Shown: positions 10,679 through 59,644 of the stretch, in pieces | Position numbering within the stretch: the stretch's first letter is position 1 | How the letters are laid out: each line of letters begins with the position of its first letter | Source: Pavona decussata | Lineage: Eukaryota | NCBI GenBank assembly: GCA_977016875.1 | Contig: CDRNST010000020.1 | Location: 5,332,001 to 5,396,000 of the forward strand | Direction: 5' to 3' | DNA length: 64,000 nt | Translations under genes and position numbers: made by a program | Notes under the pieces: model-generated | Databases searched by the model: none | What the model was told of the DNA's origin: nothing | The model's input: the letters and a program-made list of their open reading frames with translations, nothing else

Positions 10679-11168
10679 TGTGGCAGGCCAAAGCCGCCGT
10701 CGCCACAAACACAAAAATAAAATGCCACAGCTTGAATGCACTTTCAAAGTTTAATGAAGATGAAAAAGGGGAAATACGAAGATAACGTATAACCCAAAAC
10801 AAGTGTGCTAGTGAGTGATTCGACTGAAATAAAATAAAACGGGAATTATTAATTACAAACTGAAAAAAGCAACAAGAACTACGCAAAATAAACAAACCGA
10901 AATATACAAGCAAACAACTAAGAAAAATACTTACAAAACTGTGGCCATAAAAAACTTGAAAATAAAAATGAAATGCAAAGAACGCTTCCCAGCTGAGAAA
11001 TATGCCCGCTCGCAGAACACAACGCAATACAAACTTGAGACGGAAAGGAAAATAACCTAGCTGGAAAACATTAGCTTATATACTGACGCAGTATGTAAAT
11101 GTTTATGTAACACACTGAAATAATTCCGAGCAAACTCCTTAGGGATAAATTGAATTCTAGGCGCAACA
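10679..11168 (-). repeat. BEL-A 3' LTR, copy 1
   Basis: tgtggcagg...gcgcaaca; ~97% identical to 59645-60134. Confidence 0.95.
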
Positions 11169-11344
11169 TTCCGGCCCCTGAACTTAAAGCGTTAAGTTCA
11201 CTTAAACTGTTAAGCGTCTAAAAAAGTAACGGAAAATAAATAAACAAATAAATGTTCTGTTTTAAGGACATTTGAAAGTTCAAGTTCACAAAAAGTGATC
11301 GGTGTTTCCTTGAAAAGTCCTCCTTTAATGACAGTTCTCATTTA

Positions 11345-14300
11345 AGGTCCTGCTCGAGAAAGCACAGCTTCGTTAGCGGTCTTGTCAAAGTACATTTCTT
11401 GGTTGCAATCTTTGCTGATCTAACGAGACTGTCTCTTCCACTATGCACTTCAATAATCCGACCCTAAGGCCATTGTCCACGTGGAACTCTTTCATCAACA
11501 ACCAAAACCAAGTCGCCAACACAAAAATTCCGTAACGGTCTTGTCCATTTTTGGCGTTCTTGAAGGGGAGGTAGATAACTTGAGAGCCATCTTTTCCAAA
11601 GTACATCCGCTGAGTACTGAATTTGTCTCCAACGGTGCTTGCAATACAGAAAAAACACCTGGTGGCATGCTACCCTCCGGTTGCAGGAGCAATAAATGGT
11701 TGGGTGTCAAAGCTTCAAAATCTGCAGGGTTGTCGCTATTAGGCGTTAAAGGACGACTGTTCAAAACACTTTCCACTTCAGTCATAATGGTGCCAAGAGC
11801 CTCTCCAGAACCAGCTGATCCCTCAACAAACTTCCAAGGACCTTGCGCGCAGACCGGATTACACACTCCCAAACCCCGCCCATATGGGAACCTCCTGGAG
11901 GATTAAATCTCCACTCAATATTCCTTTGCTGAAGAAACTTCTCGATTTTCCGATGGTTCCAATCATTTATGGCTTCTCGAATTTCTCTCCTGCACATAAA
12001 TTGGTGCCGTTGTCACTTCTTATGATCTTTGGATGACCTCTGCAATTAATAAATCTCCCAAGTGCATTAACAAACGAATCTGTATCCAAAGACTCGGTCA
12101 CCTCTATGTGAGCGGCTCTCATGGTCAAGCATGTAAAAAGGCATCCATAGTGCTTTACAATACTCCTACGCTGTTTGACGTACTATGGCCCGAAGAAATC
12201 AATACCAACGGAAGCGAACGGTGGCTGATCAGGGGTCAGCCGATCTTTGGGTAAACTCGCCATCAATTGTTGTCCACAAACAGCATTCTGTCTTCGACGA
12301 GTAAGGCATCTCCCAATCACTCTTCGAACAGTAGCACGACCCTTAACAATCCAGAATCTTTGATGCAAGCTCGCCAACACGTATTCCTGGCCAAAATGCC
12401 CAACAAGCTCATAATGTTCCATGATGATAAGGCTGGACAAGTGATGGTTGCTTGGTAACAAAATCTGATGCTTTGCTTGGACGTTTATTGGAGCATATTC
12501 AAGTCTGCCTCCAACTCTAAGAATACCCCTCTGATCCAGTCAAGGCCTCAACTTGTAAATTGAGCCACTCGAGCCTGAACATCTCAGTACATGCTTCTGC
12601 CGAACCAAAGAACTTGACCTCTTTTGAGCGTCTAAAACTTGAGGAAATGGCTCTCTCTGCACGTATTTGATTAGCTCAACTTCTGTGGTCCTTATGTCTT
12701 CCAAAGAAAGTTCGTTGGGTAGCAGACGGGTGTCCGAGGGATTACTTAGTCCCCTACGTGAATAAAGCTTGTTCTTTATGAATTCTTTGAAGCGGATGAG
12801 CCAAGCGACACCCCTCTTCAGCTTGTACTAGTAAGAATAACGTTGGATCATCGAATTCAATGTTGTTCCTGGAAAAGCCAAAAGACGAACTTGTATTTCC
12901 TTCCTGATTTCCGGATCCTCATCTAAAGTCTTGTGTAAGGGTTCTGGGAAAGTAGGCCAGAAATGTTCATCTTTCCACAGGAATTCTGAACCGCTGAACC
13001 ACTGAGTGTTATGAATCATTTCATCTGCAGTTGCTCCTCTGCTAATTAAATCTGCTGGGTTATCGGAAGCTGGCACGTACCTCCACTGGGCAGGCTGAGA
13101 ACCATCATGTGTGACTGCAAGTCTATTGGCGACGAAGGTATGAAACCTCTTCTCCACATTCCTAATATATTGCAGCACAGCAGTAGAATCTGACCAGAAA
13201 ATTGACTTGTCGATCGCAAACTCCAACTCTTCACGAAGTACTCGGTCAATCTTGACTGCGAGGACAGCTGCCGACAGCTCCAGCCTCGGTATGGTCATCG
13301 GTTTTACATGGGCTAGACGAGATTTTGCCACAAGAAAGTTGCAATGAACCAGGCCGTCCACATTTTCAAATCTTGCATATGCAACTGCGCCAAATGCCAC
13401 TTGGGATGCATCGGCAAAGTGGTGAGGCTGAGAAGACAATATCTCTCCAAAGTTTCCTGGCTTAGGATGCCGTGACACGATGACTTGAGAAAGCTTAGGC
13501 AGGTTTGCGAGCCATGTCTTCCAGCACATAGCTTCCTCTGATGCAATTACATCATCCCATCCTAATTTCTTTCGACAAAGGTCTTGCAAAAGCTTCTTGG
13601 CAGACACGACAACAGGTGACACCAGCCCAAGAGGATCATAAACCGAGCTTGTTACGGATAAAATCCCTCTTTGAGGGAAAGGTTTGTCCTTTGGTACAAC
13701 CTTGAAAGTGAATGTGTCAGTGCCCACATTCCATTGAACTCCAAGTGTTCTCTCGAGGGGAAGATTGTCGTTAAACAAATCCAAATCCAACACTGACAGA
13801 GCTCTATCGTACTTCGGAATAGTCTGTAGCACATCTCTATCATTACTCAGCCACTTGGTTAATCGAAAACCACCTCTGGACAACAAACCACAAAGCTCAA
13901 CTCTGAAGCGCACAGCAACAGCCCTTGAAGAAACCGACTTAAGACAATTGTCAACGTAAAAATTCTTGAGCGCAGTATCGATCACTTCATATCAAAAATC
14001 GCCATAGTTATCTTGGGCAGTCCTCCTTAAAGCAAAACTCGCGACCCTAGGCGAAGAGGTGCTACCAAAAAGATGAACCTCTATTCTATACTCGACTGGT
14101 TGCTGTCTCACATCGTCACCAGGCCACCACAAGAAACGAAGAGCGTCGTGATCCCTTGGGTCGACTCTCACTTGATGAAACATGGCCTCGATATCCGAGA
14201 CAAAGGCAATCGATTCTTGACGAAATCTGTTGAGGACATCAAACAGGTTGTTGGTCAAATCAGGACCATGTAACAGCTGATCATTCGATGACATTCCTCT

Positions 14301-17300
14301 AAACTTTGCTGCACAGTCGAACACCACTCTCAGCTTATCTGGTTTGTGGGGGTGGAAAACTGCATGATGCGGAAGATACCATAGAGGCTTGCCAGTGGGG
14401 TTGAGTTCCTTATGAGGCACCCGATGGGCATACCCCTTGGTGATGTAATCGTTGATTGTCCCCTTGTATTCTTAAAAGAATTCTTCAACACACAGAAACC
14501 ATTTCCTCAACAACTGCAACCTCTGCTCGGCCGCCAATCGATTGTTTGAAAGATAAGGTGGCTGATTTCTTCAAGGAAGAGCTACTTGGTAGTGGGCAGA
14601 GACGATCTTAACTGAATCCTCCATCGTTTTTAGTGCCTTCTGATCTTCCACGGACATAGCCACTTTAGAACTGCATAACGCATCAACGAAATCTGTCCTC
14701 CAAAACTTTTCTACTTGCTGCAATAAAGCCTCATCATGATCACCTCTACCGCTCTCCAGACGTACAAAGTTCACATTGAAATTGGAATCTCCACTAAACC
14801 TCTCAACAGGTCCCATCAAAGTCCAACCAAGTAATGATCGAACAGCTACAGGTTCTCCCCTTGCACCACGTCTCTCTTCCAACTCCCAAAAAGCCTCTGG
14901 AGCATTGCATCCAATGAGCAGCCTAACATCTTTGCCTTGTATCTCTGGAAGCTCAATGTCGCTCAGATGAGGCCATCCTTTCACATCTTCAGGCACTGGA
15001 ATACTTTGACTTGAGATAGTTAAGCAATCAACGGACCACACTCTTCGTATTTCCAATGTTGAATCACCATCCAAAGAACTATTCTTAGTTTCCCTTTTTA
15101 TCATATTTTTTATATCTTCATTTACTGTACCTAGTTTTATACGTACTTTTTATCTATTTTATTAATTGTAAATACGCAATTCAGTCATGTATTGATTGTT
15201 AAACTATCTATCCATCCATCCATCTATCCATCCATCCATCCATCCATCCATCCATTCATCCATCCAAATGGTAAGCTTCAGCTCCAAGCCGGACTTAGCA
15301 CTGTCCTTCTTCTCTTGTGTGGTCAGGAAGAAATCTCGCCGTTTACCTTGAAGACCTAACTCCTTCACCAGCTCAGAATCACAGAGAGAAACATCTGATC
15401 CGTTATCCAGGAGAGCATACGACCAGACAAACTGTCACGTACTTTGACCGGAACAACTCTGAGGTGTATTCTCTTCTCAGTTGACTGGCAACGGTTGTTT
15501 TGGTTTCTTTGATTTCTTGCACCAACCCCAATTGCATAACTCTGAGTAACATGACCTCCACAAGAACTTGTGTGACCTTGGATATCGCGATGTGTACCGG
15601 AAGCTGAACCAATGCCAGTCATGTGACTCTGCGTGACACGATCTCCACCGGAAGTTATATCAGGCATAGTTGCGTGACTCAGGAAATCGCGGTATGGTCC
15701 GGAAGTTGTACCAGCCCTAAAGGCGTGACGCTGAGTGACACCATCACCACCGGAAGTTGCACCGATTGTCATTGTGTGACTCTGGTTAACACGATCTTCA
15801 ACTAAGCGCAGACGAAGGACTCCTTCACGAAAGCAATTGACCTAAATGTTGCGGTTCGCAGACAGCTCCGTGGGGGGGGTGGATCACCGTCATATGCTTC
15901 CTGTTACAACCTTCGACATAACAGGCACTCTTTTGCAGGCATCCCCTGGCTTTGTGTCCCATCTTGAAGCAATTGTCACACAATCTGTGTTCTCGCAAAG
16001 TGTTTATGCGATCGGCATACGATTTTCTTTTGAACTCCTCACAGTTCCATAACTGATGTAGGCCTGCACATACAACGCACTTCCCGGACCCAGCACCAAT
16101 ACCTTGGTTCACAGCAGAACGGCTGTTATCATTAAATGCGCTACTCTTCACATTGGAGGAAACAGGCTTGACTGAGCCCACTTGAGCCGCGAATGTGGTT
16201 CCCCTTGATGAGCTGCTGGGCTTGTTAGTCTTTTTGGTCTTCTCTCTGTCACCAGCAATAATGTTTCCACACACAGAATCGCTCACTGCTCGGGCTCTCT
16301 TGGACACAAACTTGGAGATGTGGTGAATTCTAGGTCTCAATCCCGACTCTTGCAAACGATCAGCAACCTCTAGCCACTTGATTCTTAGATAAAACGGAAG
16401 TCTTTCCGCGACGCTCCTCAGGTTCTCGGCGCTATTGATCTCGTTCAGGTATCCAATGGATTCCAAGACGTTTTGACAGTCTCTTAATTGATCCGCAAAG
16501 GTCAGTAAACCATGCTGGTCATAAGGCTTTAACGGAGGGCCTCGAACTACCCTATTGAGGTGTGCAGTAGCAATCTTGTATGGATGTCCAAACGTTCCTC
16601 AAGCAACACTCTAGCTGTCTGATATCCAACCGCAGGCTCGAAAGCCGAACAGCTGCTAATGGCGTCCTTTGCAGTCCCTGTGCAGAACTGCAACAAATAC
16701 GAGAGGCGCTCGCTATCATCCGATGCATTTCTTGTGATGCTGTTCTCAAACAAGCGAAAAAAATTCCAGTAATCGAGTGGATTTCCGTCAAACTTGCTAA
16801 TGTCAGGTTTTGGTAAGGAGAATCCTTGCTTAATCGTGGACGCCATTGACTGGAAGGTCTTCTGTTGAAGTCCAATCATTTGTTGCTGCTGATGCAATAA
16901 TTGTTCAAGGTTTTCATGGTAAGGAGGATTTCCACGGTCAAGGCTAGCTTTAGGCTCACCGTAAGCGGGTTTGCACTTCCATTGAGAAACAGGATCTAAA
17001 TCGGAACGCACGTGTAATGTGTTCGTCTCGAGTCTCGATGGCAAAGGTGCGTGTGTAAGTGCAGACTTCGCCGTAAAACCGGTGTCCAGGAAATTAACAG
17101 TTCGCGGGTCGTCGCCCTTGGCTCGTGGAACATCGGACGTCGGGGGTGGATCGAAGGAATACGCAAAATGATCCTTGTAACCTTCTCCTTCCTCTAAAAT
17201 TTGCACTCTAAGACACGCTTGTTCAATTTTATTTTCGACCTCCAATAACTCCTCGCGCTTTACTACCACACGTCTTTGCTGCAAATCGAATTTCTTCTTG

Positions 17301-17809
17301 AGTTGCTGCATTTTTAACTCAGCGAGAGCCTCTTCTACCTTGGCCTCTTTGACCTTCACCGTTAAATGCGAAATTGCTTTAGAAACCGAACTCCGAGATT
17401 TTCTGAACACCGAAGAAGAGCCATACTGGCTGGCTGAATCATTCGCATCCACCGAAGGCAACCTCTGAGAGCCATCAAGCCACTTCTGAATGCGCTGCAC
17501 AAACCGGCGATTCTCGTCGCTTAGATCTTCGAACCAAGTTGTTGCTTCAAAAATTTCTTCCGGATCATCAAGACACTGTACATAAGCTTCATGAGCACGC
17601 CGAAAGTTCGTGAATGCTGGTTCCAGGTTAGCTAGCTTGCTTCGAACACATTCATACTCTCGCGAAACCATCAACGCTTCAATCTCATTTCGAATCCTTG
17701 TTACGTGACCCTTATATCCGTTCCGTGAAGTTTTCAAATTTTGTTTCAACTCTAAGCGAGGAGTGCCACTCCCGGAGCGGTCGTCGACTCGACGGTCCTG
17801 TGAGAGCAT
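11345..17809 (-). pseudogene. BEL-A gag-pol, fragmented by frameshifts, stops and an insertion
   Basis: Gag LPKPDISKFDGNPLDYW, Cys-His knuckles (CVVCAGLHQLWNC, CDNCFKMGH..C, CYVEGCNRKH), [30 protein letters not shown], RNase H FADAS..IPRLEL..WSDS, integrase GIDFFGP, GGVWE, LTPNHLL. Confidence 0.93.
15082..15266 (+). mobile_element. Short AT-rich insertion ending in an (ATCC)n tail within BEL-A pol (probable LINE/SINE 3' end)
   Basis: Interrupts the pol frame between ..LELKLTI and SSLDGDS..; ends in ctatccatccatcc...; tail is one 4-bp unit shorter in copy 2 (~56896-57076). Confidence 0.7.
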
Positions 17810-17865
17810 GTGGCCAAAACCAACTGGGTTGCTGACATAAACTTCCACACAGTTTTTCAAATAAA

Positions 17866-18227
17866 TGTGGCAGGCCAAAGCCGCCGCCGCCATGAACACA
17901 AAAATAAAATACCACAGCTTGAATGCACTTCCAAAGTTTAATGAAGATGAAAAAGGGGAAATACGAAGATAACGTATAACCCAAAACAAGTGTGCTAGTG
18001 AGTGATTCGACTGAAATAAAATAAAACGGGAATTATAAATTACAAACTGAAAAAAGCAACAAGAACCACGCGAAATAAACAAACCGAAATATACAACCAA
18101 ACAACAAAGAAAAATACTTACAAAACTGTGGCCATAAAAAACTTGAAAATAAAAATGAAATGCAAAGAATGCTTCCCAGCTGAGAAATATGCCCGCTCGC
18201 AGAACACAACGCAATACAAACTTGAGA
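17866..18227 (-). repeat. BEL-A 5' LTR, copy 1, truncated (362 of 490 bp)
   Basis: Matches 59645-60006, then switches to unrelated RT sequence. Confidence 0.93.
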
Positions 18228-32451: not shown

Positions 32452-33378
32452 TTTTTTTTTCAATATTTATTTAAAGTAACACATCTTTAACAAATTACAC
32501 GTATAACAAATTACACACTGCAACGACAAAGTACTCTACTATGGCCTCCGATATTACAATAAACATTGCTTATTTACACCAGGTGTTACATACATTAGGA
32601 AAATGAATATAATAAAATAATAAATTAATTCTGAATATAACGAAACAAAAACAAAACAAAACACACAAAAAAACGAAAAAAGGTTAATAGCATGAGGATG
32701 GGGGAGAAGGAACGATTTCTGATCTTAATTTAATACAGTAGTCTGTAAAGTTTATGAGGAGCATAATCACGTTGCTAGTTTTTCTTAGGTGTTAAATTAC
32801 AAATTTTCAACTTTGTATTTATAATTGATTCTAGTAATAAATTCGTTTAGTACAAGTGAATTGTTCTTTAGTTTACTTTCATACACATAGAATTTCATGA
32901 AGAGGAGGGTGCAGTTGAATTTTCTCACTAGCTTCTTGTATGTTGGGTGCTTAAAGGTGGCAAAAAGCATTTCCTTTGTATCTGGTTGAAAGTTAGAAAC
33001 ATTCTGATTATTAAACCAATAAATGACTTTGTTTGTAAAGGTTTTTGTAAATTCGCAGTCTACAATAGTGTGATTTATGGAATCTGGCTCACCGCAGTAA
33101 ATGCAGTCACTGTTTGTATTTATCCCATATCTAAAGAGTTCTTTCTTTGTGATGACAATCCTATGAATAAATTTGAATTGAAATTCTCTCAACTTATTTT
33201 CTTTGCATATTTTTGAAGCCATTTTAAAAACATCTGTCCAATTCTCTGTGTGTATTGAAATATCTCTTTTCCATCTTTCTGGGCCAGTGTGAGGCGATTG
33301 GTGTTTCTTAACGAGAAGTAGGCGATAATAGTCTCTTGCCCTATACGTTTCAAAATTGATTTGACTAGTTTCGCTCAG
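32452..33378 (-). mobile_element. L1/Tx1 LINE, piece 3 (3' end)
   Basis: zf-RVT FQFKFIHRIV..CIYCGEPDSINHTIVDC, stop at 32797, AATAAA then A-tail at 32452-32460. Confidence 0.9.
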
Positions 33379-33772
33379 TGTAACGGCCTCTCAACCGTTT
33401 AGGCATTGCGTTACGCAACGAGACACATCATGTGTCATGACATCTTTTCATACGGGACTGTTAAAGCTCCAAGTGGAGCTGAGACGTCGCTAAACGTCTT
33501 GACTAGGTTTTAGCTTCGCTCGAAGCGACAGTAATTTCTCACGCAACCCGTGCAGATTAGTAGCCTTACAGTCTTTGACGGTCTTGTATGCGGTTCAACA
33601 GTAGGACTACCTCAAGCTGTATGTATGTTTGTTGATTTTCTGCCTTTCGGTGATCGCCTGATCTCAGTTAGTGACTTAAAATAAACAGAGCCGATACGGA
33701 TTATGTTAGACTTTTGGCCTTTGTAATCGTCGTTTCCGCGCGCCCTTCTTAGAAAGAAAAGCGGTCGCCACA
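33379..33772 (+). repeat. BEL-B 5' LTR
   Basis: tgtaacgg...gtcgccaca; AATAAA at 33680-33685. Confidence 0.96.
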
Positions 33773-33783
33773 GTCAAAGACTG
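33773..33783 (+). promoter_or_regulatory. Non-tRNA primer-binding site, complementary to LTR 33569-33579
   Basis: GTCAAAGACTG abuts the LTR end and is the exact reverse complement of CAGTCTTTGAC in the LTR. Confidence 0.7.
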
Positions 33784-33807
33784 GAAATTCCTCACGGATA
33801 AAAAAAC

Positions 33808-36800
33808 ATGGATTCACAAAAACATTACCAAGATCAACAAAGTGACCCTGGAATTGGACTAACACCAGATGAATTCCTCATCAAACCAAGCAACCTTAGA
33901 GACATGCCAAATACAACATGGAAAGAAAATGTCGCCTTAACAGGAACAGAGGTTAGTGATGTGCCCTTTATTTCGTTGGAAGATGCGTCGCCGCGTCCAA
34001 AAATAATTGAAATTTCGTCGAGTAAAATTACTGACATTACGGGAAAAAACACTAGGTCCAGGACTCTCACGGCTAAAGGCCGGGAGTATCAAAGTGGCTT
34101 GAAGAAAACCGCCGCGTTATCCAAAGATCACGAATTACACGCAAGACTGAGTAGCTTCGAAGAATTAGTACACTCTGGTCAAGACACAAGTAAAATTAAA
34201 ACTGAAATCACCGTTGTTACAAAGGAAGTAAATGATGCATTACGATTATTTGACGAGTGGATAGAGCTTTCAGAATGACCCAACTGAAATTCAGCGTGCT
34301 ACCGAAAAGCAAGCCTATTTGCTGGATACATGGAAGTCCATTCGTGCTACAGCTGTAAATGAAATTAAGAGGGTTCGAGAGGACAATGACTCTGTTTTCT
34401 CTCAAAAATCTCGTCACTCGCGAAAGTCAAGTCTATCAAGCGGAAGTTCACACAGGGACACACTGATAAACGTAAGAGCTAAAAGAGTGGCCTTGGAAGA
34501 GAAACTGAAGTTTTCAACAGTCATCGCAGAGCAAGAGAAAAGGTTAGGGCAGCTAAAAATTCAAAAGAAACTTGGAGAAGTCTGAGCGCAAGAGGCCATG
34601 TACCAGAAAACTGTGGAAGAAGAGGACAAAGCAGACGATTTTCAATCTCCCTTGCTGCCAACCAAACAGTACGATCCTATACCCGCCTTCCTGAGGGACA
34701 ATAATGAAGGGCTTACGTTAACACCAGAAGTTGTTCCTTCAGTACCGCGGAATTTTCAAGCATTTCCAACTGCAAGTGCCTCACCAATGTTTACGTCTCC
34801 CACCAGTAACACAGTTTATTCTAGTACACACACTAGATTCAGCCTTGGAACACAGGTCCCCCTAACTCAGAACACAACGTCCTCTTCATGCAAAACGGTC
34901 TATACCAGTACAAACACGAGAGCTAGCTTTGGATCTAATGTCCCAACAACCTTTGCCACACCCCACACGGACAGACCAGGTCTCACCTCTTCAAGAGGCT
35001 TTTGTGGAAATCCACCAGTTTTTATTCCATCACCCGATCCAGTTCAAACCCTTCCACCACAAGATTACCTGCTAGATTTCAGTGACACTTTAACCAGATT
35101 GACACAGCTACAACGGCTACCGCAGGCTAAACCGGATGTGTTTAAGGGAGATGAGCAAGACCAAACAAAGTTCTTCCTGTGGGAGAACGCGTTCGACAGC
35201 TTAATCAATTCAATACCTATCACAGCCCAGCAGAAACTGCACTTATTATACCAATATCTGGATGGTAAAGCCAAAAGGGTTATCGAACAACTGCAGTACC
35301 TTGTTCAAGACCCAGACAGCGCATACAAGCAAGCACGTACAATTCTCAAGGAACGGTTTGGTCATCCTGCGATTATTAGTACCAGTTTTGAGAAAAGATT
35401 GGCGAACTGGCCAAAGATTCCTCCATATGACGCTGCTGCTTTAGAGGAATTTAGTGACTTTCTGTACCAAGTTCAGATAGCAAGTCAGCACATGAGCGGC
35501 CTAGGAGTTCTCAATAACCCGTCACAGATCCAAAGCCTCGTTGAAAAACTTCCTGCTTGGTTCAAGAACAAGTGGTCAGACAAGGTGCTAAAGCTTCAGA
35601 AAAGCCATGGCAAAGATGCTTTCCCCTCCTTTAAAGACTTTGTGCTGGAAGTACGTTATCATGCTGAACGGACAAACATTCCTCAGATCACTCTCACTTC
35701 AGGAGCGAGCAGCTCAACACAGTCAGACCGCTCTAAGAACTCCAACCGTACACCTGGTAAACGATCTGCAGGCAGTGCTTTAACCAGCACCGTGGCACAG
35801 AACTTGATAGTGAAGTAACCTCTCCAGTCGAGTTAAACCAAACATCGAATGTTTTTGCAACTCAGAAACCAGACCCTAGCACCCCTGCGGAACTTAACAC
35901 TTATTGCTTCTATCACAAGATGAAATCTCATGCTATGAATGACTGTGAACAGTTTCAGAAACTGAGCTATGAGGAGCGCAAAGATTTCTTGTTGAAAAAC
36001 AGGATCTGCCTAAAATGTGTCAGCTCTAACGAACATGTCTCGAAGGACTGCAAAAGAGACAAGTTAGAATGTAAGATTTGCAAGCAGATGCACGCTACTA
36101 TACTGCATGACCCGACCAGACAAAAGAAAAAGGACACCAGTCAAACTAACTCCGCCTGTTCTCAAGTTTGCGGGCAAGGACGGCCAGCACGATCCTGTGC
36201 TCGAATAGTCCTGATCGAAGTCTTCCACCAAGACAATCCCTCGGCAAAGGTACCCACCTATGCAGTGCTGGACGATCAGTCAACAGATGTCTTTATCACT
36301 GAACCCCTTCTCGAGAAGCTTAAGGTCGAAGGCCAAGAAGTGAACCTTGAAATCAATACGATCACAGGCTTGAACAGTGTCCGCACCAAGAAAGTCAATG
36401 GTCTAGAATCCAAGACACCGAAAATCGTCACAAGTCCATCAAGATTCCTTTTGCTTATTCACAATAGAATATTCCAGCTAGTCAAAGAGACATTGCGACA
36501 CCAGAAATAGCCAGATCTTGGAAGCATTTGGAAGAAATCGCCTGTCACATTCATTACCATCCCAATGTGGAGATAGGCTTATTAATTGGCGGTAACATTC
36601 CTTCAGCATTCCAGCCACTGCGCATTATTTATGGCAGCGATAATGAACCTTGGGCTGAAGAATACAAGTTCGGCTGGACGATCATTGGTCCAGTGTGCGT
36701 CGACAAAGAAGAAGAAACATTGAACTGTACCTCAGTAAACTGCATCACAGTACAAAGTGAATGCCCTCAGAATGTTTTCACTGTGCCAACAAGCAACCGT

Positions 36801-39800
36801 TTCAAAGAAGAGTCCATAGTGTCCTTCGCCACAAGACAGCACCTTAAAGACGTTACCTCGCCTCAGCAAATAAGAGAGATGATGCAGTTGGATTATAGTG
36901 AACTCTATCATGCCCGAAACATCCCAGGCACTGAGAAAGGTGAAAGCGTAGAAGACAAGCGCTTCAGTGAAATCCTTACCACTGGCATACACAAAAATGA
37001 TTTGGGAAACTGGGAGATGCCGTTGCCTTTTAAAACAGATACTGTTTCTCTGCCAAATAATTGTGAACAATGTTTGAAGAGATTACTAGGCATCAAGAGA
37101 AAGTTCCTAAGAAATGGAGAACTATGGAACCACTACACCGAATTTATGCAAAACCTCTTCGACAGAAATCACGCCAGTGCCGTCCCATCAGAGGAACTTA
37201 AGACCGAAGCAGGCAAAGTCTGGTTTCTTCCGCATTTTGATATCTACCATCCGAAGAAACCTGACTAAATTCGGATAGTCTTCGATTGCAGTGCTGTCTT
37301 CGACAATCAGTCTCTCAAACTCCTCCTGCAAGGACCTGACATGATGAATACTCTCATTGGTGTACTGTCACGATTTCGGAAAGAAGAAATAGCAGTGACA
37401 TGCGACATAGAAAAGATGTTCCATAGTTTCTACGTAAACCCTGAACACAGAGACTACCTGAGATTCCTGTGGTTCAACGATAACAACCTGGACGGCCAAA
37501 TCATTGAGTATCGCATGAATGTCCATCTATTTGGGGCCGTCTCTTCGCCGGGCGTTGCCAACTTTCGTCTTAGAATGACAGCTGAAGCTGGGTGACAAGA
37601 GTTTGGTCCGGAAGCAGCGAATTTCCTACGAGATGATTTCTATGTGGACGATGGACTAAAGTCTTTTGACACGCCTGAAGGTCAAGGTGCCATCAAGGTT
37701 ATCAAGAAAACTCAAGCCATGTGTGCAACCGTCAATGTGCGCTTACACAAGTTTGCAAGTAATAGTAAGACAGTGTTGGAAGCTCTACCTGTTGAAGATC
37801 GCTCAAAAGACCTAAAGGATCTGGATCTCCGGCATGATATTCTGCCTGTCCTACACTCACTGGGTACCTACTCGTGCATAGAGTTTGACACGATTGGATG
37901 CTGTATTCAGCTTAAAGACAAACCTCTCACTCGCCGAGGGATTCTATCATCCGTAAGCTCAGTATACGATCCATTAGGCATTGTGGCGCCAGTGATTTTA
38001 GTGGGGAAACAGTTACTCCAGGAACTGTGCCGTGATGGCATCGATTGGGATGATCCTGTACCAGACCACATTCATTCATGATGGGAAAAGTGGAGATCAG
38101 AGTTACCCCTTCTAGAGAATATCAAGATCCCAAGATGTGTCAAACCCAGCAATTTTGGTGAACCAGTCACCACAGAACTGCATAGCTTCTCCGACGTCAG
38201 TTTCGTAGGCCTGGGTCAAGTAACCTATTTGCGCCTTGTAAACAATGCGAATCAAGTACATGTCAGCCTCCTTATGGGTAAAGCCAGAGTAGCACCACTA
38301 AAGTCTATTTCAATTCCACGTCGTGAACTCACTGCAGCCGTGATTTCAGTCAATGTGGCGTCAATGCTTAGCAGAGATTTAAACTACTTCGATCTAGTGA
38401 AGGTGTTTTATACTGACTCCTCCGTCGTTCTGGGTTATATACGCAACGAAGCAAGACGCTACCATACGTATGTCTCAAACCGCATGCAGCAAATCCGTGA
38501 CAGCTCAGATCCGACACAATGGCTTTACGTCTCCAGCTCTGACAACCCCGCTGATATTGCGTCAAGAGGCATAACTGCCAAACAACTCTCGGAAAATGAA
38601 GTGTGGTTCAAAGGTCCCGACTTCCTCTGGAAGAATCATTTGTCGGTGGTGAACCATGACCCTGCTCCTGATTTGAATCCTGAAGACCCAGAGGTAAAGA
38701 AATGCAAAGCAACGGCTCTCATTGCGAACCACGAAGTTACCAAGTGGAAAGAAGAGAAACTCTTCCCCAAAGTTCTAGAACTAGAATGCTTCAACCATTC
38801 TTCAGCGCTCGACCGCCTGAAAAGAAGCATCAGCTTTATCCAGAGAATGATTGAAAAGATTCGACCTAACAAGCAGTACAATAAACGACCAGTAGCTGGC
38901 CCGCCAACGGTGGAAGAAATGCACTTAGCAGAAGAAGTTATTCTCAAGTCAGTGCAGTTACGTTACTTCGAGAAAGAGATCCTGGTTCTCCAAAAGCTAA
39001 ATAAGGGTGACCACATGTTCCAGAACCGCAACAGCGCCCGCGTCAGAAGCGAAAAGTTGAAACAGACAAGCACACTGTTCAGACTGGATCCCTTTCTTGA
39101 CCAAAAAGGGTTACTCAGAGTGGGGGGTCGACTCAAGAAAGCTGCCTTAGCCTTTGAAGTGAAACATAGTAGAGACCAGCACCACCAGGGCCGTGGAATG
39201 ACCCACAATGCACTTCGCCAAGCCGGTTACTGGATAATCAATGGTTGTTCTTCTATCTCCTATCTGCCTCAGAGATGTGTTACTTGCCGCAAGTTATGCG
39301 GATCTGCTCAAGTCCAAAAGATGGCTAACCTTCCTGAAGAACGGCTTACTCCTGCCCCGTTTTTCACGTATACAGGCATGGATGTTTTCGGCCCTTGGTA
39401 CATCAAAGAGGGTCGAAAAGAACTAAAGCGTTGGGGTATAATCTTTACATGCCTATCATCTCGAGCCATTCATTTGGAAACGTTAAACACAATGGAAACA
39501 GATTCATTTATCAATGCTCTCAGACGCTTCGTCAATCGAAGAGGCAAAGTTAGGGAACTGAGATGCGACAGAGGAACAAACTTTGTGGGAGGCAAAAACG
39601 AGCTCAGTGCTGTTTTGAAAGAAGTCAATACTGATGCAATTAAGAACTTTCTCCTGACACAAGATTGCGATCTGATCGAGTTCAGAATGAACGTGCCAAC
39701 TGCATCCCATATGGGCGGCATATGGGAGCGACTTATTCGCACCGTACGTGCAGTTCTCTCAAGCCTTTTGCAAGACCATGCCCAGCAATTAGATGATGAA

Positions 39801-40307
39801 GCTCTACGAACTCTGTTCACAGAAGCAGAAAACATCGTAAATAGTCGCCCACTTACGATCGACAATTTGTCAGATCCAGATGCGCCTGAACCAATCACAC
39901 CGAACCACCTGCTCACCTTTAAAGCTAAAGTGGTGTTACCACCTCCAGGAAACTTCTCGCGGCCAGATCTTTACACGAAGAAATGGTGGCGCAGAGTGCA
40001 GTACCTGACGGAACAGTTTTGGGGTCGCTGGCAACGAGAATATTGCATGCTGCAGCAAAAACGCCAGAAATGGAACGAAACCAGCCCTAACAGTGAAGTT
40101 CGTGATGTCATCTTGATCCGTGACGAAACATGCCCCAGAAACCAGTGGCCACTTGCGAAAGTTACCGAAGTTTTGCCCAGCGATGATGGCCTGGTTCGTA
40201 AAGTCCGTCTGCTTGTCACTCGATCCGGTACCAGAAAGGTGTTTGACAGACCTATCCACAAGTTGATCCTGATTTACCGACAAGATGAAGATAGAAGTAA
40301 CGGTTGA
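33808..40307 (+). pseudogene. BEL-B gag-pol with multiple stops and frameshifts
   Basis: Gag LPQAKPDVFKGD, Zn knuckles, protease YAVLDDQS, RT WFLPHF..DIEKMFH..YVDDG, RNase H, integrase GMDVFGP..DRGTNF..GGIWE. Confidence 0.94.
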
Positions 40308-40464
40308 TTTGGAGTAGACCTTAATGACCAGAGTACGACCCCGTCGGTGAGCCAGAACAATTCTCAGGAAGAGAGACATTTATTTAGTGAACTCTGAGAA
40401 CATTTAGTTTTATTCATATTTGTTTACTGTAATTTCATACATTTTACCATGTCTGGGGGAGCCA

Positions 40465-40857
40465 TGTAACGGGCTCTCAACCGTTTAGGCATTGCGTTAC
40501 GCAACGAGACACATCACGTGTCATGACGTCTTTTCATACGGGACTGTTAAAGCTCCACGTGGAGCTGAGACGTCGCTGAACGTCTTGACTAGGTTTAAGC
40601 TTCGCTCGAAGCGACAGTTATTTCTCACGCAACCCGTGCAGATTAGTAGCCTTACAGTCTTTGACGATCTTGTTTGCGGTTCAACAGTAGGACTACCTCA
40701 AGCTGTATGTATGTTTGTTGATTTTCTGCCTTTCGGTGATCGCCTGATCTCAGTTAGTGACTTAAATAAACAGAGCCGATACGGATTATGTTAGACTTTT
40801 GGCCTTTGTAATCGTCGTTTCCGCACGCCCTTCTTCGAAAGAAAAGCGGTCGCCACA
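40465..40857 (+). repeat. BEL-B 3' LTR
   Basis: About 12 differences from the 5' LTR; preceded by a polypurine tract. Confidence 0.96.
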
Positions 40858-41225
40858 CTCAGTAAGAAAGATTCCCAGTTTTCTCTGTAATTGAAGATCA
40901 CGTTTTACCCTAGGACTTGCGCTGTGTTCTTCAAACGCACAGGAATTGCACTCAAGATTTGATAGAACTGGAGAAAGTTTGTGTTGCAATGATATTTAGC
41001 TTGAAATTCTTGAAAAGTTAGATATTGACCGTTTTCATTAAAAAGTTGTTGGATTGTATGGATACCCTTGGTAAACCATTCCTTTATAAATAGCGGTTTC
41101 CCATCAACTAAGATGTCTTTGTTATTGAAGAGAATGGTGTCAGTTCCTTGATCATAATTGTACAGAGTCTTCATTTCATCAAATGCAATAAGTATGTCTC
41201 TATAAAGTGTCGGAATGTGCCTTGA
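40858..41225 (-). mobile_element. L1/Tx1 LINE, piece 2
   Basis: HIPTLYRDIL..ILFNNKDI..LFIKEWFTKGI..FLQFYQILSAIP; joins pieces 1 and 3 in frame once the insertions are removed. Confidence 0.9.
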
Positions 41226-52345: not shown

Positions 52346-53158
52346 TATATTATTTGGAGAATACAACTCAGATTACCTGTTTGATATTTGAAATTCAAAA
52401 TTAGAAAGAAGGCCGAATAAATCAGATGAAAATGTTCATATAAGCTTATATAATGTTCATACAGCCACAAGGTAACATGTATGATTTAAGAGTGTGGCAG
52501 GCCAAAGCCGCCGTCGCCACAAACACAAAAATAAAATGCCACAGCTTGAATGCACTTTCAAAGTTTAATGAAGATGAAAAAGGGGAAATACGAAGATAAC
52601 GTATAACCCAAAACAAGTGTGCTAGTGAGTGATTCGACTGAAATAAAATAAAACGGGAATTATTAATTACAAACTGAAAAAAGCAACAAGAACTACGCAA
52701 AATAAACAAACCGAAATATACAAGCAAACAACTAAGAAAAATACTTACAAAACTGTGGCCATAAAAAACTTGAAAATAAAAATGAAATGCAAAGAACGCT
52801 TCCCAGCTGAGAAATATGCCCGCTCGCAGAACACAACGCAATACAAACTTGAGACGGAAAGGAAAATAACCTAGCTGGAAAACATTAGCTTATATACTGA
52901 CGCAGTATGTAAATGTTTATGTAACACACTGAAATAATTCCGAGCAAACTCCTTAGGGATAAATTGAATTCTAGGCGCAACATTCCGGCCCCTGAACTTA
53001 AAGCGTTAAGTTCACTTAAACTGTTAAGCGTCTAAAAAAGTAACGGAAAATAAATAAACAAATAAATGTTCTGTTTTAAGGACATTTGAAAGTTCAAGTT
53101 CACAAAAAGTGATCGGTGTTTCCTTGAAAAGTCCTCCTTTAATGACAGTTCTCATTTA

Positions 53159-56100
53159 AGGTCCTGCTCGAGAAAGCACAGCTTCGTTAGCGGTCTTGTC
53201 AAAGTACATTTCTTGGTTGCAATCTTTGCTGATCTAACGAGACTGTCTCTTCCACTATGCACTTCAATAATCCGACCCTAAGGCCATTGTCCACGTGGAA
53301 CTCTTTCATCAACAACCAAAACCAAGTCGCCAACACAAAAATTCCGTAACGGTCTTGTCCATTTTTGGCGTTCTTGAAGGGGAGGTAGATAACTTGAGAG
53401 CCATCTTTTCCAAAGTACATCCGCTGAGTACTGAATTTGTCTCCAACGGTGCTTGCAATACAGAAAAAACACCTGGTGGCATGCTACCCTCCGGTTGCAG
53501 GAGCAATAAATGGTTGGGCGTCAAAGCTTCAAAATCTGCAGGGTTGTCGCTATTAGGCGTTAAAGGACGACTGTTCAAAACACTTTCCACTTCAGTCATA
53601 ATGGTGCCAAGAGCCTCTCCAGAACCAGCTGATCCCTCAACAAACTTCCAAGGACCTTGCGCGCAGACCGGATTACACACTCCCAAACCCCGCCCATATG
53701 GGAACCTCCTGGAGGATTAAATCTCCACTCAATATTCCTTTGCTGAAGAAACTTCTCGATTTTCCGATGGTTCCAATCATTTATGGCTTCTCGAATTTCT
53801 CTCCTGCACATAAATTGGTGCCGTTGTCACTTCTTATGATCTTTGGATGACCTCTGCAATTAATAAATCTCCCAAGTGCATTAACAAACGAATCTGTATC
53901 CAAAGACTCGGTCACCTCTATGTGAGCGGCTCTCATGGTCAAGCATGTAAAAAGGCATCCATAGTGCTTTACAATACTCCTACGCTGTTTGACGTACTAT
54001 GGCCCGAAGAAATCAATACCAACGGAAGCGAACGGTGGCTGATCAGGGGTCAGCCGATCTTTGGGTAAACTCGCCATCAATTGTTGTCCACAAACAGCAT
54101 TCTGTCTTCGACGAGTAAGGCATCTCCCAATCACTCTTCGAACAGTAGCACGACCCTTAACAATCCAGAATCTTTGATGCAAGCTCGCCAACACGTATTC
54201 CTGGCCAAAATGCCCAACAAGCTCATAATGTTCCATGATGATAAGGCTGGACAAGTGATGGTTGCTTGGTAACAAAATCTGATGCTTTGCTTGGACGTTT
54301 ATTGGAGCATATTCAAGTCTGCCTCCAACTCTAAGAATACCCCTCTGATCCAGTCAAGGCCTCAACTTGTAAATTGAGCCACTCGAGCCTGAACATCTCA
54401 GTACATGCTTCTGCCGAACCAAAGAACTTGACCTCTTTTGAGCGTCTAAAACTTGAGGAAATGGCTCTCTCTGCACGTATTTGATTAGCTCAACTTCTGT
54501 GGTCCTTATGTCTTCCAAAGAAAGTTCGTTGGGTAGCAGACGGGTGTCCGAGGGATTACTTAGTCCCCTACGTGAATAAAGCTTGTTCTTTATGAATTCT
54601 TTGAAGCGGATGAGCCAAGCGACACCCCTCTTCAGCTTGTACTAGTAAGAATAACGTTGGATCATCGAATTCAATGTTGTTCCTGGAAAAGCCAAAAGAC
54701 GAACTTGTATTTCCTTCCTGATTTCCGGATCCTCATCTAAAGTCTTGTGTAAGGGTTCTGGGAAAGTAGGCCAGAAATGTTCAACTTTCCACAGGAATTC
54801 TGAACCGCTGAACCACTGAGTGTTATGAATCATTTCATCTGCAGTTGCTCCTCTGCTAATTAAATCTGCTGGGTTATCGGAAGCTGGCACGTACCTCCAC
54901 TGGGCAGGCTGAGAACCATCATGTGTGACTGCAAGTCTATTGGCGACGAAGGTATGAAACCTCTTCTCCACATTCCTAATATATTGCAGCACAGCAGTAG
55001 AATCTGACCAGAAAATTGACTTGTCGATCGCAAACTCCAACTCTTCACGAAGTACTCGGTCAATCTTGACTGCGAGGACAGCTGCCGACAGCTCCAGCCT
55101 CGGTATGGTCATCGGTTTTACATGGGCTAGACGAGATTTTGCCACAAGAAAGTTGCAATGAACCAGGCCGTCCACATTTTCAAATCTTGCATATGCAACT
55201 GCGCCAAATGCCACTTGGGATGCATCGGCAAAGTGGTGAGGCTGAGAAGACAATATCTCTCCAAAGTTTCCTGGCTTAGGATGCCGTGACACGATGACTT
55301 GAGAAAGCTTAGGCAGGTTTGCGAGCCATGTCTTCCAGCGCATAGCTTCCTCTGATGCAATTACATCATCCCATCCTAATTTCTTTCGACAAAGGTCTTG
55401 CAAAAGCTTCTTGGCAGACACGACAACAGGTGACACCAGCCCAAGAGGATCATAAACCGAGCTTGTTACGGATAAAATCCCTCTTTGAGGGAAAGGTTTG
55501 TCCTTTGGTACAACCTTGAAAGTGAATGTGTCAGTGCCCACATTCCATTGAACTCCAAGTGTTCTCTCGAGGGGAAGATTGTTGTTAAATAAATCCAAAT
55601 CCAACACTGACAGAGCTCTATCGTACTTCGGAATAGTCTGTAGCACATCTCTATCATTACTCAGCCACTTGGTTAATCGAAAACCACCTCTGGACAACAA
55701 ACCACAAAGCTCAACTCTTAAGCGCACAGCAACAGCCCTTGAAGAAACCGACTTAAGACAATTGTCAACGTAAAAATTCTTGAGCGCAGTATCGATCACT
55801 TCATATCAAAAATCGCCATAGTTATCTTGGGCAGTCCTCCTTAAAGCAAAACTCGCGACCCTAGGCGAAGAGGTGCTACCAAAAAGATGAACCTCTATTC
55901 TATACTCGACTGGTTGCTGTCTCACATCGTCACCAGGCCACCACAAGAAACGAAGAGCGTCGTGATCCCTTGGGTCGACTCTCACTTGATGAAACATGGC
56001 CTCGATATCCGAGACAAAGGCAATCGATTCTTGACGAAATCTGTTGAGGACATCAAACAGGTTGTTGGTCAAATCAGGACCATGTAACAGCTGATCATTC

Positions 56101-59100
56101 GATGACATTCCTCTAAACTTTGCTGCACAGTCGAACACCACTCTCAGCTTATCTGGTTTGTGGGGGTGGAAAACTGCATGATGCGGAAGATACCATAGAG
56201 GCTTGCCAGTGGGGTTGAGTTCCTTATGAGGCACCCGATGGGCATACCCCTTGGTGATGTAATCGTTGATTGTCCCCTTGTATTCTTAAAAGAATTCTTC
56301 AACACACAGAAACCATTTCCTCAACAACTGCAACCTCTGCTCGGCCGCCAATCGATTGTTTGAAAGATAAGGTGGCTGATTTCTTCAAGGAAGAGCTACT
56401 TGGTAGTGGGCAGAGACGATCTTAACTGAATCCTCCATCGTTTTTAGTGCCTTCTGATCTTCCACGGACATAGCCACTTTAGAACTGCATAACGCATCAA
56501 CGAAATCTGTCCTCCAAAACTTTTCTACTTGCTGCAATAAAGCCTCATCATGATCACCTCTACCGCTCTCCAGACGTACAAAGTTCACATTGAAATTGGA
56601 ATCTCCACTAAACCTCTCAACAGGTCCCATCAAAGTCCAACCAAGTAATGATCGAACAGCTACAGGTTCTCCCCTTGCACCACGTCTCTCTTCCAACTCC
56701 CAAAAAGCCTCTGGAGCATTGCATCCAATGAGCAGCCTAACATCTTTGCCTTGTATCTCTGGAAGCTCAATGTCGCTCAGATGAGGCCATCCTTTCACAT
56801 CTTCAGGCACTGGAATACTTTGACTTGAGATAGTTAAGCAATCAACGGACCACACTCTTCGTATTTCCAATGTTGAATCACCATCCAAAGAACTATTCTT
56901 AGTTTCCCTTTTTATCATATTTTTTATATCTTCATTTACTGTACCTAGTTTTATACGTACTTTTTATCTATTTTATTAATTGTAAATACGCAATTCAGTC
57001 ATGTATTGATTGTTAAACTATCTATCCATCCATCCATCTATCCATCCATCCATCCATCCATCCATTCATCCATCCAAATGGTAAGCTTCAGCTCCAAGCC
57101 GGACTTAGCACTGTCCTTCTTCTCTTGTGTGGTCAGGAAGAAATCTCGCCGTTTACCTTGAAGACCTAACTCCTTCACCAGCTCAGAATCACAGAGAGAA
57201 ACATCTGATCCGTTATCCAGGAGAGCATACGACCAGACAAACTGTCACGTACTTTGACCGGAACAACTCTGAGGTGTATTCTCTTCTCAGTTGACTGGCA
57301 ACGGTTGTTTTGGTTTCTTTGATTTCTTGCACCAACCCCAATTGCATAACTCTGAGTAACATGACCTCCACAAGAACTTGTGTGACCTTGGATATCGCGA
57401 TGTGTACCGGAAGCTGAACCAATGCCAGTCATGTGACTCTGCGTGACACGATCTCCACCGGAAGTTATATCAGGCATAGTTGCGTGACTCAGGAAATCGC
57501 GGTATGGTCCGGAAGTTGTACCAGCCCTAAAGGCGTGACGCTGAGTGACACCATCACCACCGGAAGTTGCACCGATTGTCATTGTGTGACTCTGGTTAAC
57601 ACGATCTTCAACTAAGCGCAGACGAAGGACTCCTTCACGAAAGCAATTGACCTAAATGTTGCGGTTCGCAGACAGCTCCGTGGGGGGGGTGGATCACCGT
57701 CATATGCTTCCTGTTACAACCTTCGACATAACAGGCACTCTTTTGCAGGCATCCCCTGGCTTTGTGTCCCATCTTGAAGCAATTGTCACACAATCTGTGT
57801 TCTCGCAAAGTGTTTATGCGATCGGCATACGATTTTCTTTTGAACTCCTCACAGTTCCATAACTGATGTAGGCCTGCACATACAACGCACTTCCCGGACC
57901 CAGCACCAATACCTTGGTTCACAGCAGAACGGCTGTTATCATTAAATGCGCTACTCTTCACATTGGAGGAAACAGGCTTGACTGAGCCCACTTGAGCCGC
58001 GAATGTGGTTCCCCTTGATGAGCTGCTGGGCTTGTTAGTCTTTTTGGTCTTCTCTCTGTCACCAGCAATAATGTTTCCACACACAGAATCGCTCACTGCT
58101 CGGGCTCTCTTGGACACAAACTTGGAGATGTGGTGAATTCTAGGTCTCAATCCCGACTCTTGCAAACGATCAGCAACCTCTAGCCACTTGATTCTTAGAT
58201 AAAACGGAAGTCTTTCCGCGACGCTCCTCAGGTTCTCGGCGCTATTGATCTCGTTCAGGTATCCAATGGATTCCAAGACGTTTTGACAGTCTCTTAATTG
58301 ATCCGCAAAGGTCAGTAAACCATGCTGGTCATAAGGCTTTAACGGAGGGCCTCGAACTACCCTATTGAGGTGTGCAGTAGCAATCTTGTATGGATGTCCA
58401 AACGTTCCTCAAGCAACACTCTAGCTGTCTGATATCCAACCGCAGGCTCGAAAGCCGAACAGCTGCTAATGGCGTCCTTTGCAGTCCCTGTGCAGAACTG
58501 CAACAAATACGAGAGGCGCTCGCTATCATCCGATGCATTTCTTGTGATGCTGTTCTCAAACAAGCGAAAAAAATTCCAGTAATCGAGTGGATTTCCGTCA
58601 AACTTGCTAATGTCAGGTTTTGGTAAGGAGAATCCTTGCTTAATCGTGGACGCCATTGACTGGAAGGTCTTCTGTTGAAGTCCAATCATTTGTTGCTGCT
58701 GATGCAATAATTGTTCAAGGTTTTCATGGTAAGGAGGATTTCCACGGTCAAGGCTAGCTTTAGGCTCACCGTAAGCGGGTTTGCACTTCCATTGAGAAAC
58801 AGGATCTAAATCGGAACGCACGTGTAAGTGTGTGTAAGTGCAGACTTCGCCGTAAAACCGGTGTCCAGGAAATTAACAGTTCGCGGGTCGTCGCCCTTGG
58901 CTCGTGGAACATCGGACGTCGGGGGTGGATCGAAGGAATACGCAAAATGATCCTTGTAACCTTCTCCTTCCTCTAAAATTTGCACTCTAAGACACGCTTG
59001 TTCAATTTTATTTTCGACCTCCAATAACTCCTCGCGCTTTACTACCACACGTCTTTGCTGCAAATCGAATTTCTTCTTGAGTTGCTGCATTTTTAACTCA

Positions 59101-59588
59101 GCGAGAGCCTCTTCTACCTTGGCCTCTTTGACCTTCACCGTTAAATGCGAAATTGCTTTAGAAACCGAACTCCGAGATTTTCTGAACACCGAAGAAGAGC
59201 CATACTGGCTGGCTGAATCATTCGCATCCACCGAAGGCAACCTCTGAGAGCCATCAAGCCACTTCTGAATGCGCTGCACAAACCGGCGATTCTCGTCGCT
59301 TAGATCTTCGAACCAAGTTGTTGCTTCAAAAATTTCTTCCGGATCATCAAGACACTGTACATAAGCTTCATGAGCACGCCGAAAGTTCGTGAATGCTGGT
59401 TCCAGGTTAGCTAGCTTGCTTCGAACACATTCATACTCTCACGAAACCATCAACGCTTCAATCTCATTTCGAATCCTTGTTACGTGACCCTTATATCCGT
59501 TCCGTGAAGTTTTCAAATTTTGTTTCAACTCTAAGCGAGGAGTGCCACTCCCGGAGCGGTCGTCGACTCGACGGTCCTGTGAGAGCAT
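53159..59588 (-). pseudogene. BEL-A gag-pol, copy 2 (additional gag stop at 59439 and a 31-bp deletion near 58828)
   Basis: Same domains as copy 1; CGA>TGA change; net 31-bp loss relative to ~17028-17060. Confidence 0.92.
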
Positions 59589-59644
59589 GTGGCCAAAACC
59601 AACTGGGTTGCTGACATAAACTTCCACACAGTTTTTCAAATAAA

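Follow-up and report, generated by a model that had tools for sequence, protein, structure and literature searches.

The window, a 64,000-nucleotide stretch of DNA, contains a BEL/Pao retrotransposon, element B, on the plus strand at positions 33379–40857, recognized from a pair of LTRs, a target-site duplication (TSD) and Pfam domains. The 5′ LTR (33379–33772) is 394 nt long, begins with TGTAAC and ends with GCCACA. The 3′ LTR (40465–40857) has a length of 393 nt and is 96.7% identical to its partner. The pentamer CTCAG precedes the element at 33374–33378 and follows it, in identical form, at 40858–40862. Because this 5-bp TSD flanks both LTRs, their ends are fixed to the base. The internal region (33784–40454, plus strand) encodes a decayed gag (DUF1759), a Pao-type protease and RT (Peptidase_A17), RNase H, an integrase (rve) and DUF5641. 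The presence of DUF1759, Peptidase_A17, rve and DUF5641 identifies element B as a member of BEL/Pao. Its LTRs of the TG...CA type and its TSD, the length of which lies within 4–6 bp, agree with this assignment, and all homologous proteins are of the BEL/Pao type. The copy in the window is decayed, with many stops and broken internal ORFs. A polypurine-tract-like sequence, GGGGGAGCCA, adjoins the 3′ LTR at 40455–40464.

The polypurine motif GGGGAGCCA recurs in relatives of element B from three phyla. The junction between the polypurine tract and the LTR start, (T)TAGGGGAGCCA^TGT(A/T)A (here and below, the caret marks a boundary), is almost invariant in element B and in L034, L036, L037, L040, L042, L049, L050 and L062, the LTRs of which are otherwise unalignable. 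The families with this junction span cnidarians, a shrimp (Penaeus) and a sea star (Patiria).

Element B is located in a region of tandem segmental duplication, the period of which is about 41.8 kb (1–22186 and 41815–64000). A second retrotransposon, element A, is present twice, at 10679–18218 and 52493–59997. A 99.8% identical copy of the 5′ end of element B lies 41.8 kb upstream, outside the window (G000:C20:5323577, L002).

The 5′ LTR of element B is directly followed by the PBS GTCAAAGACTG (33773–33783), which starts at the first base after the terminal CA of the LTR. The PBS is perfectly complementary over 11 nt, with zero spacer, to the 11-mer CAGTCTTTGAC inside the LTR (33569–33579, plus strand), as the sequence-only reading had described. 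In the 64-kb window CAGTCTTTGAC occurs only at 33569 and 40655, once per LTR, the copy in the 3′ LTR spanning 40655–40665. The 11-mer, which is the proposed self-primer and 5′ end of R, has an initiator-like start, ACAGTC, and is followed by GG. Its position upstream of the AATAAA polyadenylation signal (33680–33685), also noted before, was verified; the signal lies 111 nt 3′ of the 11-mer, a spacing that implies a putative R of about 130 nt. No TGG occurs within the first 9 nt after the 5′ LTR, in agreement with the earlier claim that a tRNA-type PBS is absent. When the internal positions of element B were slid against its own LTR, none of the 6,636 had a complement of 11 nt or more, and the maximum was 10 nt. 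In a pooled control of 66,028 positions from 10 elements, the probability per position was 1.4e-3 for a complement of at least 9 nt and 4.5e-5 for one of at least 11 nt. The latter value agrees with the chance estimate of about 1e-4 made from the sequence alone. The LTR/PBS complementarity of element B is real and far beyond chance.

The host assembly (602 Mb) contains at least 40 LTR copies of the element B family and 19 full 5′ ends, which are 94–100% identical. Uninterrupted frames of about 2,188 aa are preserved in some copies. The 11-mer is kept in 29 of the 30 LTR copies examined, and nearly all copies have an unaltered PBS. Three private changes, each in a single copy, affect the PBS (L008 and L017) or the LTR site (L015). 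Because the copies are 94–100% identical, the family is too young for within-family co-variation to be visible. The host genome is very rich in BEL/Pao elements: it has 1,400 first-look candidates for the Pao domain, and many of the 150 that were scored have stop-free open frames of 1,700–2,200 aa.

Relatives in the host genome were identified by tblastn with the RNase H–integrase ORF of element B and share 43–60% amino-acid identity with it upon tblastn re-scoring (45–66% as first scored). Elements from other species were taken from Penaeus chinensis, Patiria miniata, Diadema antillarum, Actinostola sp., Oculina patagonica, Dendronephthya gigantea, Nematostella vectensis and one further ENA assembly. 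LTR pairs were determined by self-blastn in 10-kb stretches, and LTR ends were set by TG...CA termini together with a 5-bp TSD. Each element was given a single fixed score, the longest exact complement in its own LTR of the sequence starting at the first base after the LTR. The LTR pairs of L032 and L051 were not found within the stretch retrieved. L052, the LTR end of which was set by pattern, was left out of the counts despite a pair of 8 nt.

The complementarity is retained in related families, with exact pairing of 8–13 nt at offset 0 in 15 of 20. The pairing families originate from the host genome, Nematostella, Actinostola, Oculina, Patiria, Diadema, Penaeus and the further ENA assembly. 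Among them are at least nine different PBS/LTR-site sequence pairs, and the LTR ends are verified by TSDs. The PBS core of element B (11 nt, GTCAAAGACTG) is also that of L065 (10 nt), and GTCAAAGACT is the PBS/LTR-site entry for both. L033 pairs over 12 nt with the PBS GTCGAATTTCTG and forms the GTCGAATTTCTG(T) group with L061 from Nematostella, the PBS of which, GTCGAATTTCTGT, pairs over 13 nt. The PBS of L035 is ATAACAACTCA (11 nt). The 9-nt pair with the PBS ATAACAATC is common to L042, L050 from Patiria and L060 from Diadema, and another 9-nt pair, with the PBS GTAAAAACT, is found in L036/L046 and L038. L040, with the 11-nt PBS GTAAAAACTCG, belongs to the GTAAAAACT(CG) group. The remaining PBSs are GTAAAACT in L059 from Actinostola (8 nt), GTTAAACT in L049 from Penaeus (8 nt), GTGAGAACT in L043 (9 nt) and CTAAAATA in L062 from Oculina (8 nt). 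Within the family of L037–L039, L038 has a perfect 9-mer, L037 differs by a one-base slip in a T-run, and the same LTR position has T instead of C in L039.

The LTRs of L033 (G000:C2:3476974-3486973) and L061 (Nematostella vectensis OW051988.1:1146053-1161272) align over their full length and have in common the TATA region, the LTR site, the poly(A) region and the U5 hairpin. In each of the two elements the LTR pair is 100% identical. The likeness of the L033 and L061 LTRs reflects either unusually strong conservation or recent horizontal transfer. L038 (G000:C50:159736-169735) lies within a long 27-bp satellite array that extends on both flanks, with a unit like ACCAAGTGTGAGAGTACTAGGGTGTAT.

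A matrix of PBSs against LTRs is block-diagonal, as each PBS matches only its own LTR or the LTRs of its own PBS group. Pairing of at least 8 nt with the element's own LTR is present in 15 of 20 families, whereas random re-pairing gives 1.8 families on average and at most 8, and none of 20,000 permutations reaches 15. The LTR sites of element B and of L033/L061 occupy homologous positions and have the same CAG...GAC GG flanks. Their central 5–6 bases differ (TCTTTG versus AAATTCG), and the PBSs differ complementarily. Element B and L065 share their pair, at positions 191 and 197, respectively, of LTRs of about 394 nt, and blastn shows no similarity between the two LTRs besides the pair. The PBS and LTR-site changes are thus matched between families and the pair is kept in element B and L065; therefore, both compensatory change and selective conservation are seen. 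These sequence comparisons indicate that the pairing is under selection in a BEL/Pao clade that spans at least three animal phyla.

A match arisen by chance, or a functionless inverted repeat that was passively inherited, could produce complementarity of this kind, and it would be favored by the shortness of the pairing, only 8–9 nt in many families, and by the relatedness of the families, which makes pairs shared within a PBS group non-independent. Yet 15 of 20 families pair at the single position tested, and the control probabilities per position are 1.4e-3 for at least 9 nt and 4.5e-5 for at least 11 nt. Furthermore, both sides of the pair changed together between groups, and the pair of element B and L065 has outlasted a divergence of the LTRs beyond detection by blastn. 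Chance would also call for mis-set LTR ends, which are fixed by the 5-bp TSDs. We consider this explanation extremely improbable.

A mature tRNA ends with CCA-3′, so that a PBS complementary to it must begin with TGG. The PBS of element B lacks a TGG start and therefore cannot pair with the 3′ end of a tRNA. The PBSs of the clade begin with GTC, GTA, GTT, GTG, ATA or CTA, and never with TGG. An 18-nt tRNA-complementary PBS of the type described by the ICTV is absent from element B. A host tRNA match to the PBS was looked for with T-loop patterns in the whole genome, ARAGORN and Rfam, and none was found, in line with the sequence-only reading. The pattern searches required a canonical T-loop. 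The 11-mer positioned 5–35 nt upstream of a T-loop gave one match in 602 Mb, which equals the control count (1) and is not tRNA-like. ARAGORN detected no tRNA in the window, and Rfam returned nothing in 33300–34000. A second sequence, TGGAAATTCCTC, starts 9 nt after the LTR of element B; TGGAAA is present in element B and L061 and missing from L033. The search for a T-loop with a 3′ end matching TGGAAATTCCTC provided two matches with tRNA-like spacing, and in neither of them did ARAGORN find a tRNA. The match on contig C146 agrees with TGGAAATTCCTC at 15 of 16 positions, but lacks a T-stem.

The PBS might nevertheless complement a fragment of a host tRNA or another host RNA, as in copia, with the LTR match being incidental or derived from that RNA. 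For element B, the host RNA would have to end with ...GTCTTTGAC-3′. Priming by half-tRNAs exists in Ty1/copia (PMC6317226), and the same PBS core can recur across phyla, as does ATAACAATC in the coral-like host and two echinoderms. However, at least nine PBS sequences match the LTRs of their own elements, which one host RNA cannot explain and for which nine host RNAs are not credible. Together with the genome T-loop search, which gave no more than the control count, and the negative Rfam and ARAGORN results, this makes a host RNA of matching sequence very improbable as the primer.

Five of the 20 families are without offset-0 pairing; thus, not every family has the trait, and another primer must serve in some relatives. 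L034, L041 and L044/L045 have no complement at offset 0, even when G:U pairs or one mismatch are allowed. L048 pairs over 7 nt at offset 0, and L058 from Dendronephthya has 8 nt, at offset 3 instead. The non-pairing relatives carry a conserved non-tRNA sequence directly after the LTR. The sequence TTCGTTGAAACGTTA is common to two families with different LTRs (among L041, L044 and L045: G000 C214, C126 and C20:5620587-5630586). The corresponding sequence is GTCAACAACGAGG in L034 (C198) and GTAAAATATCGT in L047/L048 (C166, C104).

The unpaired relatives bear on the possibility that the pairing is a leader structure that closes R-U5, with a role in packaging, dimerization or translation control, while another host RNA primes at the same or a nearby site. 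Stems of U5 and leader surround the PBS in retroviruses, and the conserved non-tRNA sequence after the LTR in the five unpaired relatives, such as TTCGTTGAAACGTTA in two families, hints at primers other than the element's own RNA. On the other hand, a primer has to be located at offset 0, and this is where the paired segment starts. There is also no conserved downstream site of the TGG/CCA type, as shown by the uneven distribution of TGGAAA, and a match to a tRNA-like gene was not found. A purely structural role of the pairing is, in our view, quite unlikely.

The phylogenetic relationships were estimated from a quick maximum-likelihood tree of the RNase H–integrase region with 25 rows, in which stops in tblastn hits were read as X. 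The pairing families and their close relatives form one clade of 23 rows (SH-aLRT 99). The outgroup sample consists of L031 and element A only. In L031, a TGG-type PBS comes after a spacer of 4 nt, and an LTR complement is absent. L041/L045, which do not pair, branch first in the clade, and the other 21 rows comprise all carriers of the pairing as well as L034, L047/L048 and L058. PBS groups track subclades. The ATAACAA group, with a support of 100, mixes elements of the host genome with those of two echinoderms.

Element A (17866–18218 on the minus strand, and 59645–59997) is a BEL/Pao element positioned outside the element B clade and without a TGG PBS. A 9-nt sequence, AAAACTGTG, which begins 9 nt past the end of its 5′ LTR, complements CACAGTTTT; the latter is found at LTR position 89, ahead of the poly(A) signal. 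Such a complement is expected by chance with a probability of about 3% over 25 offsets, and as a feature of a single element it is weakly suggestive.

The LTR site is located 93–331 nt from the LTR end in the pairing families, and always upstream, by 22–161 nt, of the next AATAAA or ATTAAA where one is present. A site in this position lies where R is expected to start. The complement has its first base exactly at the A of an initiator-like Y^AGT(T/C) in many families, and in element B it starts one base earlier (tta^CAGTC). Seven families have GG immediately 3′ of the LTR site (AC^GG), and this edge is where a cut would fall by analogy with Tf1. TATA-like boxes are present upstream of the LTR site in L061 (TATAAA, 36 nt), L033 (TATAC, 38 nt) and L049 from Penaeus (TATATG, about 39 nt), and their spacings predict a transcription start at the LTR site or 5–8 nt before it. 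No TATA box was found in element B or L065. Several other families have an A/T-rich motif just 6–12 nt upstream of the LTR site; if this motif were the TATA box, transcription would start downstream of the LTR site. The initiator-like and TATA motifs and the position relative to the poly(A) signal suggest that the 11-mer may form the very 5′ end of the RNA.

The A/T-rich motifs allow for another arrangement, in which the pairing is selected, but the LTR site belongs to U3 and the transcription start is downstream. Only the copy of the site at the 3′ end of the RNA would then pair with the PBS, circularizing the genome or bridging two packaged RNAs, and the pairing would serve priming in an unusual geometry or aid strand transfer. 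The TATA-like motif 6–12 nt upstream of the LTR site in several families would place the start about 18 nt downstream of the site. However, cutting the 3′ copy would separate R and poly(A) from U3 and block the completion of the minus strand on that RNA. The TATA-like boxes of L033, L061 and L049, 36–39 nt upstream, fit a start at or just before the LTR site, and the complement often begins exactly at the initiator-like Y^AGT. We regard a location of the LTR site in U3 as unlikely.

In minimum free energy folds of the RNA from the LTR site to the PBS, the full closing helix is kept in 13 of 15 pairing families. A hairpin in U5 is predicted just 5′ of the PBS, ending 8–10 nt before the LTR end. 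The sequence of the hairpin varies between families, with predicted stems of UUCUU/AAGAA in element B (33745–33758, plus strand, about 15 nt before the LTR end), CUCCG/CGGAG in L033/L061 and CCUCCCG/CGGGAGG in L042. It resembles the U5 stem-loop that, according to Lin and Levin, is reportedly needed by Tf1. The whole 232-nt fold of element B is not more stable than those of shuffled sequences (z = -0.42).

The four sequencing runs compared with the element consist of assembled Logan contigs. Two coral metatranscriptomes contain a related gag with 90–95% identity and some LTR. Runs X1 and X5 (over 33100–39000) probably represent DNA, since they cover unique flank and many LTR/flank junctions. 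An anthozoan is suggested as host by the organisms from which the runs derive and by the likeness of the LTRs to Nematostella. One BEL/Pao element (L052–L054; ERR13868499, ERR13868517 and ERR13868443) was assembled in three runs, each time in another rotation, into a contig of 7,346 nt, the ends of which overlap by 30 nt. The contigs of L052–L054 form a closed cycle of one LTR and the internal region, which is expected from RNA, one-LTR circles or collapsed genomic copies.

We hypothesize that elements of the element B clade prime the synthesis of minus-strand DNA with their own RNA, in a manner similar to Tf1, and we consider this likely. Transcription would start at the LTR 11-mer (33569) or a few bases upstream. 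The 5′ segment of the RNA would fold back and pair with the 11-nt PBS adjoining U5, and the pairing would close an R-U5 domain of about 200 nt with a small U5 hairpin beside the PBS. The conserved AC^GG, immediately after the segment that pairs, might then be the point at which the RNA is cut, and the freed 3′-OH could be extended through U5 and R to produce strong-stop cDNA. The PBS would be regenerated in every cycle when the primer is copied during plus-strand synthesis, which would keep both sites complementary. For the element B clade, we infer the position of the transcription start, the cleavage of the RNA and the priming itself. Self-priming of the Tf1 type is the simplest explanation, because it accounts at once for a PBS at offset 0 without a tRNA site, for where the LTR site lies and for the compensatory changes. 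The self-priming proposed in the sequence-only reading has gained support, as most related families keep the complementarity and no host tRNA match to the PBS was found by T-loop patterns, ARAGORN and Rfam.

The observations have a broader implication, which we put forward as reasonably probable. An old and widespread clade of Belpaoviridae, present at least in Cnidaria, Echinodermata and Crustacea, may replicate without a host tRNA, using as primer the 5′ end of its RNA cut at AC^GG. Self-priming would thereby have originated independently a third time in LTR retroelements, and for the first time in BEL/Pao, and the members of this clade would escape host control exerted via the tRNA primer or tRNA-derived small RNAs.

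The statement that BEL/Pao elements are described as tRNA-primed is correct according to the ICTV profile of Belpaoviridae, in which a host tRNA primes replication and the PBS, 18 nt long, complements tRNA-Arg or tRNA-Gly (PMC8742986). The BEL/Pao element Achilles uses tRNA-Tyr (PMC4580426). Self-priming has been described for the Tf1/sushi group and predicted for the Tcn1 clade and the TAR lineage of Ty1/copia (PMC6317226; PMC6934838). It has been demonstrated for Tf1 only, and is inferred for a few lineages of Ty3/gypsy and Ty1/copia (PMC6317226). A large survey of BEL/Pao elements does not discuss PBSs (PMC3118150). We found no report of self-priming in BEL/Pao in the open-access literature, and an earlier description is possible.

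Host tRNA priming counts as a hallmark of LTR retroelements and is part of the ICTV description of Belpaoviridae (PMC8742986). If the element B clade is self-primed, a third superfamily of LTR retrotransposons would have the mechanism, in metazoans, and the tRNA-free solution would have arisen repeatedly. The clade would offer many natural variants of primer and PBS sequences for study, and self-priming would explain the failure of annotation tools based on tRNA PBSs on these elements. Dependence on tRNA exposes retroelements to silencing by 3′-tRNA fragments (PMC7472051); self-primed elements would be outside the reach of such silencing. As a simple rule, elements of the clade can be annotated by searching their own LTR for a sequence exactly complementary to the bases that follow the LTR.

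The mechanism that we propose is a known one, self-priming, which would be new in BEL/Pao, and not a new kind of mechanism. As in the Tf1/sushi group of Ty3/gypsy (Metaviridae; PMC6317226, PMC5445492), the PBS of element B adjoins U5 and is matched by a complement of about 11 nt in the LTR of the same element, where R presumably starts. The two also have in common the absence of a tRNA PBS, a predicted U5 stem-loop beside the PBS duplex, and pairing that is maintained across related families. In contrast to the Tf1/sushi elements, which have a Ty3/gypsy-type pol and, in most cases, a chromodomain integrase, element B is not a chromovirus and contains Peptidase_A17 (Pao), DUF1759 and DUF5641. 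The pairing in the element B clade varies from 8 to 13 nt, and its transcription start and RNase H cut are proposed from sequence. The hosts differ as well: marine animals for the element B clade, and fungi or vertebrates for Tf1/sushi.

The element B clade resembles the Tcn1-clade chromoviruses and the TAR lineage of plant Ty1/copia elements (Houba, Osr-1), for which self-priming is likewise inferred from sequence only and is specific to a lineage within the superfamily (PMC6317226). Those lineages belong to Ty3/gypsy and Ty1/copia, whereas the element B clade is BEL/Pao and metazoan. The PBSs of copia and element B both lack a TGG start. Copia is primed by half of a host tRNA, from the interior of tRNA-Met, whereas the PBS of the element B clade matches the element's own LTR in each pairing family, and no tRNA-like gene carries the sequence. 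Element B shares with the canonical BEL/Pao elements Tas, Pao, BEL and Achilles the gene content and order, LTRs of the TG...CA type, a 5-bp TSD and a polypurine tract before the 3′ LTR. Unlike these elements and L031, the element B clade has neither a tRNA PBS nor a spacer followed by a TGG-type PBS.
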